From Adineta vaga (lineage: Eukaryota > Animalia > Rotifera): a DNA stretch of 64,000 bases. Made by a program: the position numbers and the translations under genes. Below the pieces are notes generated by a model. It was not told the DNA's origin and ran no database searches. It saw nothing but the letters and a program-made list of their open reading frames with translations. The DNA lies in the NCBI GenBank assembly GCA_021613535.1, contig CP075493.1:2232001-2296000 (forward strand), read 5' to 3'. Every line of letters begins with the position of its first letter. The stretch's first letter is position 1. This document shows, one piece after another, positions 20,512 through 25,692 of this stretch.

Positions 20512-21831
20512 ATGTCAGAAACATTTTGTGAAAAATTTAACCGACATTTTTCATTGATAGTCTATGCCTTTAGTCCATCTCATATTAAAGATGTTTTTAT
20601 CAGTATGGCAACAACCTATGAAAGTAAAGTTCATCAATTAATTGTTCTCTCTAATAGTGTTAATTTCTTTTGATTAGCACCAAAAATTATATCAATTACT
20701 TCATTACCAATTGCAATTACTTGTCGTATTGTACAATTACTTATTTTAATCTATGCATTTGCTTATATTTTATGGTATAAACGTGGTTATCAAGATCGTG
20801 ATGCATCATTATTATCATCTGTAACACTTGAAGCAAATGGAATTGGTGTTTATATGAGTCATCCGCAAATGACAGTAGATAATGCGGATTATGTAGTTCC
20901 ACCCGAAGAAAATAATGCTCTATTTATTATGACAAATTATATTCAAACAGATCAACAACGAGGTTTGTGTGCTGAAGGAACGGACATTCGAGATTCCAAC
21001 TGTAATGTTGATTCGGAATGTGAAATTAAACGTAAAAATCGTATCATATGGAGTGGACGTTGGACAGGTAAATGTCGTCAACCTGAAGGTCGATGTGAAA
21101 TGGAAGGTTGGTGTCCTGTTGAAAATGATACCGTCATACCTAAACCAATTATTGGTACATTAAATTATACAATACATCTGAAAAATTTTATTGAATTTAC
21201 ACGTTTTAGTATTACACGAAGAAATATTCTTAATGATACAAGTTATTTTCGTACATGTATTTATCATCCAATTCATGATAAACTTTGTCCAATATTTCGT
21301 ATTGATGATATATTGAATATGGTTGAAGATGATGAAGAAGAACGGGAAAAAATGTTAATGAATGGTGCTGTTTTACGTATTAAAATTGATTGGATGTGTA
21401 ATTTAGATTTAGGTGAACAAGAATGTAAACCATGTTATTCATTTGGTCGATTAGATAGTCGATCGAAAGATGAACATTTTTCTTTTGGTTTTAATTTTCG
21501 TCATGCATCACATTGGAGAGTAAATAAAACATCCTATCGAACATTGCAAAAAGCATTTGGATTGAGATTTATCGTTTCTGTGAATGGTGATGCAGGAAAA
21601 TTTAGTTTATTAGTTTTAACATTAAATATTGGTTCAATTATTGGTGTACTTGGTTTAGCAACATTTATTTGTGATATTGTTGCATTATATTTTAGTGAAC
21701 AAGGTTATATTTATCGACGACAAAAGTTTCAATCAGTTCATTTGAAAACTATATCAATTAATTCATCATTTTCAACACCATCTTCCCTGCATAAGAGAAA
21801 AATGGCAAGAAAAATAAAACGACGAACATAA
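20512..21831 (+). CDS. P2RX: P2X purinoceptor-family trimeric ion channel
   Basis: Exon 20512-20623 plus exon 20678-21831. Motifs: YETPK, TM1 followed by KRGYQ, DYVVPPEE, CEMEGWCPVE, LCPIFRIDDI, WMCNLD, GFNFRHA, RTLQKAFGLRF, TM2 GSIIGVLGLATFICD, and YRRQK (YxxxK). Confidence 0.95.
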
Positions 21832-21941: not shown

Positions 21942-23552
21942 ATGATGCATCGTTCATTACAAGAATTACTTCTGAATGATTATCTTGATTTTGATAATCA
22001 TACAAATGATGATGATATTTCCATATCATTTGATAATGAACGACATATACGTTATAATATAATTCATAATGAAAAATCTAATCGAGAATATTTTCGAAAA
22101 CTAATTCATCATCGAATTTATGATTATTTCATGGCATTTGTTGTTATATCATGTTCAATTACACTTGGATTAAGTTTAGAAACCGATAATGAATATATTC
22201 GAAATGAATATCGACAAAAATTTATTTATATTCTTGATGAAATTTTAATTGCAATACTTTTTGTCGAATTTATTATAAAATTATATTTAGAATCCAATCA
22301 TTATTGGCAAAATTGGACAAATATTTATGATTTTACAATTATTCTTTTTGGTTGTATTGAAATTTTTTGGAGTTTATTCTTTCAAAAATATAATTCAACT
22401 ATTACAAACTTACTCAAAGGTTTTCGTTTATTACAATTAATACGTTTATATCGAATCATTAAATTTTCTGAAGGTTTACAAGTATTAACAAAAGCATTAA
22501 TTAAAACTGTAATAACATACACATTCAGTGTTGGAATATTAGTTTTTCTTTTAATTTATGTCATTGCAGTTATTGGACAAATGCTCTACGGTAAATCAGA
22601 AGATAGGTAAATTTAATAGTGTTTTATTGTATTTTAAGAGAGTGCAGATATCGATTTTTAAATAACTTCGAACCCTTTTAGTTTTGTTTAGTCCATGGCA
22701 TCAGTTTTCTACATCATTAACTGTTGTAACAAGATTAATTTTTGTTGATAATTGGAATTTAATTGGACCAGATCTTGAAGAAAATGGTAGTCCACCTATA
22801 TCACGATGGTTTCTAGTAATTATTGTTTTTATTGGTAATCGAATTGTTACGAATGTACTTGTTGGAATTATGATTGAAAGTGTTTCATCAGTTAATGAAG
22901 ATTATATGAAAGAAAAACGCGAGAAGAAAGTTTTACGTAATCAACAAAAACGTGAAGAATTAAGTAAACGTATGAGAAAATTAGAAAGACAGACATTCTT
23001 TTCTTTTTTTTCCTATAAGTTTAACAATTTGAATTATTGTTTAGGAACAATTCAAGTCTTAAATACACGTTCTTCCGATACGAATAATAAAATAAATAGA
23101 ACAGAAAATACAATTGAACAAATTAAATCGAAATTAAAATTAATTCAAAATGAAACAATTTCACCGAAAGATTTTATCTTTTCCATTGATTGGTTAGACA
23201 AATTAATCACATGCAGGTAATAATCTATCATCATATTCATAAATCAAAAATGATTATATTTATTGACATTTCTCTAATTCAATGAATTTATTCTGTCTGA
23301 ATTGATAAAACTAAATAGAATTAATTGAATTAGTTTTAGAAAAAGTGCAAAGGTCTTCTTCTTTTTTTTTAGGTAGGAAATTAACGATCATAATTCTATT
23401 CTTATCGGTAAATTTCTAGTGAAAAATCTCAAATTGAAGCTCAATCAGTTCGTCATCTACTTATTCATCTTGTTCAATCATTATCGGATATAACTGAAGA
23501 AAATATGCGAAGATTTCGACATGAACAACATCACATTAGTTTAAACGAATGA
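21942..23552 (+). CDS. CATSPER3: CatSper3-like single-domain 6TM cation channel subunit
   Basis: Exons 21942-22606, 22692-22969, 23045-23216 and 23420-23552 join in frame. S1-S6 are present with a basic S4 (KGFRLLQLIRLYRIIK), pore FVDNW, S6 TNVLVGIMI and a C-terminal coiled coil. KLYLESNHYWQNWTNIYD and FSEGLQVLTKALIKTV parallel recalled CatSper3 segments (KVYVDPINYWKNGYNLLD; YSQGIRTLITAVGQTV). AATAAA follows the stop. Confidence 0.78.
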
Positions 23553-23590
23553 ATAAAGAAAATGACAAGATAAAAACAAATAAAATCAGT

Positions 23591-25692
23591 TCATTTTTCT
23601 ACTAAAGTATGCCATCGTGTAATTGTTTCACCTTTTGCTGCAAGCATTGCTTCCCAATGTGAACTTTGACCAGCACCAGTCGCATTATGACCTAAATAAG
23701 AAAAAGTTAACTCTATAGTCGAATGGATTGAGTAGAATAATTCTCTACCAAACGAAATCGAACCAAAATCTTGATCAATTGAATTAATTGCTTTTTTATT
23801 CAGAACAATTATCACAATTGTAATTTGTTCGAGAAAACTTTCTTGAATATTAAATGGATAACGTTCAGCAAAGATTGGATGATATTGTACATGTCGTATA
23901 ATTGTTTCATTTGTTGTTATAGTTTCTCCAGCTGTATTTCTTAGTAAGATTTGTACAGAAGTATCTAAAGAAAATTCATCAAACTGATTTATATTGTTCA
24001 TCATCATTATGACAACTTTTACCAGGTGCTCGACCATGTGTGGCTATTCCGAAATTAATTCCTTTTCCAATTTCAAGAATAAGCATCGATTGATTTCGAT
24101 CATAAGCTAGACCAATTTCTAATTCAGGTACAAGTGAATTCATAGATTTATCACCATTACGAATCAAAGAATTCTGTCGTGAATGAGAAGCACTACTTCC
24201 ATAAGAACGACTGCCAATATCCGAATCTTGTGAAGGCTAAAAATATGAGAAATTGATTATGATTATTACATCTATTATATACTAACATAAGCTCGTTCTA
24301 AAGGAACAATTTTACACATATCTTCATCGAGATTAACCATGGCAAACATAACTGTTGCTTCCGCCAGAAGTTTTTCACGTTTAAATCGTTCATATGTATA
24401 CAAACGAAATCGAATACCTTGGGTTTGAATAGTTTCTAAGAAATAAAAAGCAATGAAATGAAAGAAGAAACAACAACACAAGTTTCAAGAGAACACAAAC
24501 CAGATGAAACTTTGCAAAAGAATTCTTCAGCAAACATTGCATTATCAATAGGTTTAACACGTGTACGAAATCGGATACGTTTATTTGGTAGAAGAGTTAA
24601 ATGTACTTGAACAAGAGTTTGTTTCGATGAATTTTGAGTCATTTCTAAATTTGCTTTGATAACAAAGACCCACATTCGACTATTTTTTGCATCAAGTTTT
24701 AATCGAACTTCTAATGTTCCCCAGGAGAAACTATTCCATGGGCCATTTGCTGTTAATGAAGAATATTCACTCGAAGCAGATTTTGTATCCTAAATCAAGT
24801 AGAAAAATATCATTTTATTCTCTAAATCATTCAATTGGAAAATTTCTCATCATTTTGTACAAATTAACCGATATTCATTCATTATTACAAATATTTTCTC
24901 TCGGAAAAAGTTCATAAAACATCTTTATAATCTTGAAATGAATAAGTCTTCTTCTTACAATAGTTTTTTCCATGAACATGTGCATTAAAGTGCATCTAGT
25001 GACATGTATTATCGAGGGAAAAAAACGGTTTCTCTTGTGACATTATAGATGATGATCTACATGAATTCTAATAGAACTTTTTTTACTAGACCGAATATAG
25101 TATTCATCGCTGAAAGTTGTCATACCATACGATCTATTGGATATATTTATCTAAAAATAACCTCCATTCTTTTCTCTAAACTTCATTATTCTTGATGAGC
25201 TATGATATTCAAAACAGCACTTGAAATATTGTACTCATAATTATATCTAAGTGTTACCATAACAAAATCTTTTTCTTCTCTAAAAATTTTAGTTTAACAA
25301 AAACCGTACGATATCAGCTGGATCCATGGAAATATGATGACGACTTTTTCTCGATTTAACATTATGATTTAAAGATGGTGATGCAGGTGCTGAACATGTT
25401 TGATCAATAGAATCATTGTCAGTTGTTGAATTTCGTCTAGTTATTGCCATAATCGTTGTTCTTTGTCGATCGATATGTTTTCTAGCTAACGAATCCACTA
25501 AAATATCAAGAAAGAAATCTATACAACACGTTTCTTGAATGTTTTCTTATCTAAAACCTTTTTTTTCTACGGATTCATTTTCCTTATTTTCAATAATAAT
25601 TGGTATTTGAGTAGAATTTCGATTGTTTACATTGGGTGTTTTTGCTAGTGGCATTAATGTTCTATAATCATCATCAGGTAATTCTGTTCCAG
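23591..25692 (-). CDS. SYT14: Synaptotagmin-14/16-like tandem C2 protein (5' end uncertain)
   Basis: C2A: QVHLTLLPNKRIRFRTRVKP...FAEEF and IRFRLY. C2B: VPELEIGLAY...GRAPDTSVQILL. The C-terminal HWEAMLAAKGETITRWHTLVEK matches the SYT14/16 pattern. Multiple short introns; the start exon was not resolved. Confidence 0.82.

Follow-up and report, generated by a model that had tools for sequence, protein, structure and literature searches.

The window, a 64,000-nucleotide stretch of Adineta vaga contig CP075493.1, carries a CatSper3-like gene on the forward strand at 21942-23552, corresponding to 2,253,942-2,255,552 of chromosome 1, made up of four exons joined by GT-AG introns and free of stops and frameshifts. 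Exon 1 (21942..22606) opens with two in-frame ATGs, at 21942 and 21945, the second of which is used by the NCBI model; it codes for an acidic N-terminus followed by S1-S5, and its end, at a GT donor, is in phase 2. After an intron of 85 nt (intron 1, 22607..22691, GTAAAT…TTTAG), exon 2 (22692..22969) encodes the pore helices, the selectivity filter, S6, and the beginning of the cytoplasmic tail, and matches Pfam Ion_trans positions 172-239. Intron 2 (22970..23044, 75 nt) is in frame and without stops in the A. vaga copy; its counterpart in related contigs is 46 or 49 nt long, so splicing is required there. The helical tail is continued in exon 3 (23045..23216), with a conserved …NE.I.P.D..F…W L… block aligning to the CatSper3 tail, and intron 3 (23217..23419, 203 nt, GTAATA…TTCTAG) leads to exon 4 (23420..23552), encoding the last helix and a TGA stop (23550-23552). 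An AATAAA at 23552-23557 overlaps this stop. Upstream on the same strand is a P2X-receptor gene, whose last large exon (20854..21831) ends 110 bp before the CatSper3 start and is not part of the channel gene.

The A. vaga database protein I4U23_000629 (414 aa) contains all four exon peptides in order, with one junction residue between each, and is therefore taken as the spliced product. Both the coordinates and the intactness of the four-exon ORF in the original prediction are correct, and the host, which the prediction had treated as a bdelloid only conditionally, is indeed one. The public name of this protein is only "hypothetical protein," and records of the gene otherwise read "Ion transport domain-containing protein." I4U23_000629 (P0179, second-ATG start) was the reference for all full-length analyses, while the exons were searched one by one. 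The genome searched consists of six contigs (100,824,805 bases), and the CatSper3-like gene is single-copy in this haploid assembly; the AV20 haploid assembly of A. vaga is described as six chromosome-scale scaffolds (PMC8494291).

The product is a single-repeat, six-transmembrane (6TM) channel of the voltage-gated type. Ion_trans (PF00520) is the only Pfam family matched by its exons, at 72 bits (E 5.8e-20) for exon 1 and 26.5 bits for exon 2. An AlphaFold2 model built from a 20-row alignment (mean pLDDT 71.8) has S1-S4, an S4-S5 linker, S5, two pore helices, an S6 extended as a long helix to about residue 344, and a second helix at 361-413. The basic S4 residues expected from the first reading of the sequence are present in the alignments (22416..22463, forward strand): K158, R161, R167, R170, and K173 keep a spacing of three residues, and the slot at 164 is taken by Gln. 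They are invariant or nearly so among 27 bdelloid-type sequences, and R167 is invariant in the bdelloids and 13 CatSper3 representatives alike. The counter-charges E79, D98, E108, and D129 are also conserved.

The selectivity filter is F238-V239-D240-N241-W242 (22741..22755, forward strand). It reads [F/L]VDNW in all bdelloid copies, compared with T-[V/A/L]-D-G-W in the CatSper3 of other animals, so that Asp240 and Trp242 are kept and Phe or Leu stands in place of the canonical Thr. The pore Asp was thus rightly picked out by the original prediction, which made no mention of the loss of the filter Thr across all bdelloids. A C-terminal coiled coil had also been proposed. For the mammalian CatSper3 tail, such a coiled coil is reported. 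The A. vaga tail is modeled as helical by AlphaFold2 and aligns with that of CatSper3, but a crude heptad test for a coiled coil was not significant, 148 of 500 shuffles scoring at least as high as the observed sequence.

Several comparisons point to CatSper3 as the closest known relative. In a phmmer search of the PDB with I4U23_000629, mouse CatSper3 (7eeb_C) scores 81.7 bits in a single alignment that joins residues 40-398 to residues 33-382 of the mouse protein (395 aa), compared with 44.9 bits for NaChBac and 41 for mouse CatSper1; CatSper4 and CatSper2 are not among the 60 matches listed. Domain II of the four-domain channel CaV2.1 does no worse than mouse CatSper3 in this search, at 89.8 bits. 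With exon 1 alone the PDB match to CatSper3 is 47 bits and that to CatSper4 is 25, and a profile of 27 bdelloid exon-1 sequences gives 60 bits for CatSper3 and 37-40 for NavAb. In structural comparison by Foldseek, 7eeb_C comes first (E 3.3e-10) and 7eeb_B next, with bacterial NaVs from rank 3. The tail by itself, compared with CatSper3 by hhalign, gives E 0.0013 and a probability of 19%, in the same register.

Of the best 150 matches in a phmmer search of 1.84 billion representative proteins, about a dozen are single-repeat relatives from outside the bdelloids, all belonging to one family. Three members spanning this family, P0038, P0145, and P0066, align with 7eeb_C from one end to the other and score 184, 160, and 219 bits; CatSper4, where it is among the matches listed, scores 73. 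Another (P0174) is named cation channel sperm-associated protein 3 of Protopterus annectens; on the basis of these scores and this name, the nearest non-bdelloid proteins are identified as CatSper3. In the other direction, a profile of the CatSper3 family run against the A. vaga genome finds the gene at 21942-23552 as its best match (133 bits for exon 1 and 56 for exon 2, with the next locus at 84), and the exon 2 match extends past the channel domain. Identity between the A. vaga protein and CatSper3 representatives is only 20-26%. There is no non-bdelloid protein at E < 1e-30 in the representative library, and no monogonont orthologue is visible there, the distant matches carrying no taxon names.

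A maximum-likelihood (ML) tree was built with IQ-TREE (LG+C20+F+G4, PMSF) from 56 rows and 311 columns; it covers CatSper3, CatSper1-like, and four-domain channel sequences, without CatSper2, CatSper4, or BacNav. The seven bdelloid proteins form one clade (support 100/100) within the CatSper3 representatives (98/96). Next to this CatSper3 clade is a CatSper1-like one, and a split with support of 100/99 separates the two from the domains of four-domain channels (32 domains, eight channels). The bdelloid stem branch is very long, at 2.03 changes per site, and long-branch effects on the placement are possible. In approximately unbiased (AU) tests, neither a grouping of the bdelloids with the CatSper1-like clade (p 0.18) nor a position outside CatSper3 and CatSper1 together (p 0.23) was rejected. 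The position expected from the original prediction, within CatSper3, is therefore the one recovered, with nearby placements left standing. The same is true of the assignment as a whole, where CatSper3 is the best single-repeat match by sequence, profile, and fold but the AU tests are not decisive. The evidence is convergent, but each line of it is moderate; from these sequence comparisons, CatSper3 orthology is quite likely, not proven.

Within the bdelloids, the gene is widespread and undamaged. Rotifer assemblies and moss or soil-type metagenomes contain 26 close relatives of exon 1 (57-80% identity), and all 26 of these bdelloid-type ORFs share the same donor site (…GK.E.|R*). In five longer related contigs all four exons are intact, in the same order, and with conserved boundaries, and a P2X-receptor gene (PF00864) lies directly upstream in L032, L034, L035, L036, and L037, as in the A. 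vaga window. Annotated full-length orthologues of 407-416 aa are found in Adineta ricciae, A. steineri, Rotaria sordida, R. sp. Silwood1, R. magnacalcarata, and Didymodactylos carnosus. In more than 10 independent bdelloid lineages, there is no lesion. Substitution rates were estimated by the Nei-Gojobori method, exon by exon, and pooled. For the closest pair, where dS is an unsaturated 0.57, dN/dS is 0.167, far from the value of about 1 that would go with the absence of constraint; it is 0.11-0.21 wherever dS could be estimated, the other pairs being saturated, and every pair has a pN much lower than its pS. The CatSper3-like gene is under purifying selection across Bdelloidea.

A search for the remaining channel subunits, as proposed in the original prediction, was positive for one of them. 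A CatSper1-like gene (L011) is found on contig 2 at about 3,940,400-3,941,700, on the minus strand. It is a single-repeat channel whose best single-repeat PDB match is CatSper1 (82 bits for human and 79 for mouse, against 65 or less for NavAb-type channels), with six Arg in S4, a canonical T-L-D-D-W pore, and a charged helical tail, and it groups with the CatSper1-like clade in the ML tree. A third single-repeat channel gene (L087), also on contig 2 (about 9,097,950-9,099,670), has the pore sequence I-T-L-E-G-V, without the Trp; it matches CatSper3 at only 21 bits and has an end branch of 4.38, and judged by its sequence it is too divergent for placement.

CatSper2 and CatSper4 were sought through the whole genome with PF00520, CatSper3, CatSper1-like, and bdelloid exon-1 profiles and with the CatSper1-like exon, about 60 isolated loci being inspected by eye and by tblastn. 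Neither was found among these Ion_trans loci, which are Kv, KCNQ, EAG, HCN/CNG, PKD2-like, TRP, IP3R/RyR, TPC, NALCN, and Hv1 channels; since the PF00520 scan scored 150 of 273 candidates, this does not imply their absence. The auxiliary-subunit families PF15149, PF15064, PF15020, PF22850, PF22849, and PF22851 gave no six-frame match at E <= 0.1, a weak result in that the search was run exon by exon, without a positive control, and with models built mostly from vertebrates.

Taken together, the A. vaga gene is probably a CatSper3 orthologue encoding a pore-forming Ca2+ channel subunit, one likeliest to be at work in female tissue and not an idle sperm gene. By analogy with known CatSper channels, the protein would assemble with other single-repeat subunits into a heteromeric (heterotetrameric), Ca2+-permeable channel, with the CatSper1-like protein, encoded in the same genome, as its probable partner. 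Such a channel would be voltage-sensitive and probably pH-sensitive, and would lie in the membrane of a cilium or flagellum; Asp240 would form part of the acidic ring of its filter. It may serve female tissue, for example the motile cilia of the corona or flame cells. The original prediction had offered cryptic sperm production or repurposing as the two ways to account for retention; this is a fair dichotomy, and both readings stand.

A non-sperm role in females is somewhat favored here. The constraint is strong and uniform in a clade without observed males, and expression of many "spermatogenesis" genes has been recorded both in A. ricciae and in Brachionus cultures free of males, which the authors took as a sign of functions beyond sperm (PMC3701536). 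A functional shift is suggested by the length of the stem, the loss of the filter Thr, and the neutralized S4 slot; the original prediction noted neither the very long stem nor the loss of this Thr in all bdelloids. The auxiliary subunits were also undetected, in what was a weak search of six Pfam families. Some of the same observations can be turned toward the other reading, that bdelloids still make sperm, and that rare unseen males, male-phase individuals, or male gametes use CatSper for flagellar control. Wherever it has been examined, CatSper is confined to sperm, and a lineage with no need of it tends to lose the entire complex (PMC2572835, PMC5553355). Here every bdelloid sampled has an intact copy under constraint, and the genome holds a second, CatSper1-like pore subunit. 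Rare sex can sustain purifying selection, which alone does not exclude a rare-male role, and cryptic sex is among the explanations that the A. vaga genome paper leaves open for allele sharing (PMC8494291). However, males, sperm, and fertilization have never been observed (PMC8494291), and where 22 of 39 "male gametogenesis" genes were found to be expressed in A. ricciae, the authors' reading was that their roles are not exclusive to sperm (PMC3701536). With a long stem branch and an altered filter that suggest changed function, and six auxiliary-subunit Pfam families undetected, persisting sperm are considered an unlikely explanation.

Two further readings concern the gene itself. It might belong to a separate, fast-evolving, single-repeat lineage of the CaV/NaV type (another CatSper paralogue or a rotifer-specific channel), its CatSper3 likeness coming from shared superfamily ancestry and long-branch placement. 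The non-significant AU tests (p 0.18 and 0.23), the stem branch of 2.03, the low identity (20-26%), and the non-canonical filter would all fit this, as would a match to CaV2.1 domain II as strong as that to mouse CatSper3 and the presence of the third, unclassifiable single-repeat gene (L087). Against it, CatSper3 is the best single-repeat match by every approach used (sequence, profile, and fold); the match continues through a paralogue-specific tail; the CatSper3 profile and the A. vaga gene are reciprocal best matches; the CatSper3 placement has ML support of 98/96; and a separate CatSper1-like gene is present in the genome. A non-orthologous origin is thus seen as distinctly improbable. 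A bacterial-type or horizontally acquired channel, with which the protein might have been expected to group had the CatSper3 identification been wrong, is rejected on the strength of the PDB scores (81.7 bits for CatSper3 against 45 for NaChBac), the tree, the spliceosomal introns, and the conserved animal synteny. That the gene could be the functionless, decaying remnant of an ancestral sperm gene has nothing in its favor beyond the absence of known sperm. This pseudogene reading is contradicted by the intact exons in related contigs and by the substitution rates, dN/dS being 0.17 and pN much lower than pS whichever pair is compared; more than 10 independent bdelloid lineages are free of lesions, and exon boundaries and the P2X neighbor are conserved. 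It is regarded as extremely improbable.

CatSper is the textbook example of an ion channel restricted to sperm, and loss of the whole complex in many animal lineages has been read as tracking sperm biology. An early survey found CatSper absent from the protostomes sampled (PMC2572835). Romero and Nishigaki (2019) include Brachiopoda among the holders of CatSper, with rotifers unmentioned (PMC6660944), and rotifers are likewise unmentioned by Cooper and Phadnis (2017). Full-text literature searches for CatSper together with rotifers returned passing mentions only and nothing on a rotifer CatSper, and the locus tag I4U23_000629 is not mentioned in the literature searched. The gene model is already known; its CatSper3 identity and its retention across Bdelloidea appear to be unreported in that literature.

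Bdelloids are a class without observed males, sperm, or fertilization (PMC8494291). A gene, probably for CatSper3, kept in A. vaga and in the other bdelloids sampled means either that it has a non-sperm job or that sperm still exist. A constrained CatSper3 and a CatSper1-like gene in a male-less clade therefore give a concrete handle on bdelloid asexuality, namely where and when the CatSper3 gene is expressed. Expression in ordinary ciliated cells would make this the first clear case of CatSper at work outside sperm; expression in a rare germline cell type would be a pointer to cryptic sperm, and if that reading were true, the CatSper3 gene would be a molecular marker for finding unseen males or male-phase individuals.

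Among known channels, the closest counterpart is CatSper3 itself (PDB 7EEB chain C and 9UBW chain C), a pore subunit of the CatSpermasome. Like the A. vaga protein, it is a single-repeat 6TM channel with spaced basic residues in S4 and a pore Asp and Trp, and it is of similar length (395 aa, against 414 in A. vaga), the two aligning nearly end to end with the helical cytoplasmic tail included. The A. vaga protein differs from the CatSper3 of other animals in its filter ([F/L]-V-D-N-W in place of T-x-D-G-W), in having Gln at one S4 slot, and in its acidic N-terminal extension, very long stem branch, and host without known sperm. CatSper1 and the A. vaga CatSper1-like protein belong to the same single-repeat subfamily, as a sister clade that, together with CatSper3, is separated from the four-domain channels at 100/99. 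The resemblance of the window protein to mouse CatSper1 (41 bits) is well short of that to CatSper3 (81.7 bits), and the A. vaga CatSper1-like gene is set apart from it by a canonical T-L-D-D-W pore and a six-Arg S4. The bacterial channels NaChBac, NavAb, and NavMs share the fold and the homotetramer-type single-repeat architecture, but match the A. vaga protein at 45 bits or less and the bdelloid profile at 37-40, without a long C-terminal tail alignment; unlike those of the bacterial NaV/CaV channels, the A. vaga gene is interrupted by spliceosomal introns and lies in an animal genomic context. The domains of four-domain CaV and NaV channels are of the same superfamily and have high per-domain similarity (89.8 bits for CaV2.1 domain II), but the A. 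vaga gene is single-repeat, and all 32 of the four-domain-channel domains sampled fall in a separate clade (100/99).

The P2X-receptor gene upstream of the CatSper3 gene lies on the same (+) strand, its last part occupying positions 20854–21831 of the window, and only 110 bp separate its end from the CatSper3 start at 21942. The same order, P2X and then channel, is also present in five other bdelloid-type contigs. Spacing this close could mean that the pair shares transcription or is trans-spliced, both candidate readings. On the other side, 39 bp past the CatSper3 stop, an ORF of 148 aa begins on the minus strand (23591–24037); it is probably the last exon of the converging neighbor gene.

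Within the gene, intron 2 (22970–23044, +) is 75 nt long in A. vaga, in frame and free of stop codons, so that its retention would add 25 residues and leave the protein unbroken. The matching introns in related contigs are 46 or 49 nt long, and splicing there is obligatory.

A whole-genome search of the haploid assembly (G000) gave one match at E ≤ 0.001, so the CatSper3 gene is single there. A. vaga is a degenerate tetraploid, with an ohnologue retained for many genes; despite this, CatSper3 has no second copy in the assembly.

Two other single-repeat channel genes are found on contig C2 of the assembly. One, CatSper1-like, is at about 3,940,400–3,941,700 (-; locus L011, 1130–2412), with six Arg in S4, a TLDDW pore, and CatSper1 as its top single-repeat PDB match (82 bits); its product is the probable partner subunit. 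The other, of CaV/NaV type, is at about 9,097,950–9,099,670 (+; L087 1949–3668), and combines an ITLEGV pore, in which the Trp is missing, with a long helical tail. At 21 bits to CatSper3 and with an end branch of 4.38 in the tree, it is too divergent to be classified.

The genome also encodes two Hv1-type voltage-gated proton channels, one on C6 at about 1,451,400–1,452,500 (+; L078 1900–2996) and one on C3 at about 13,317,600–13,318,640 (-; L080 3112–4142). Both have …VLRLWKIVRAIHA… in S4, and they are probably an ohnologue pair. In human sperm, Hv1 acts as an alkalinizing partner of CatSper.
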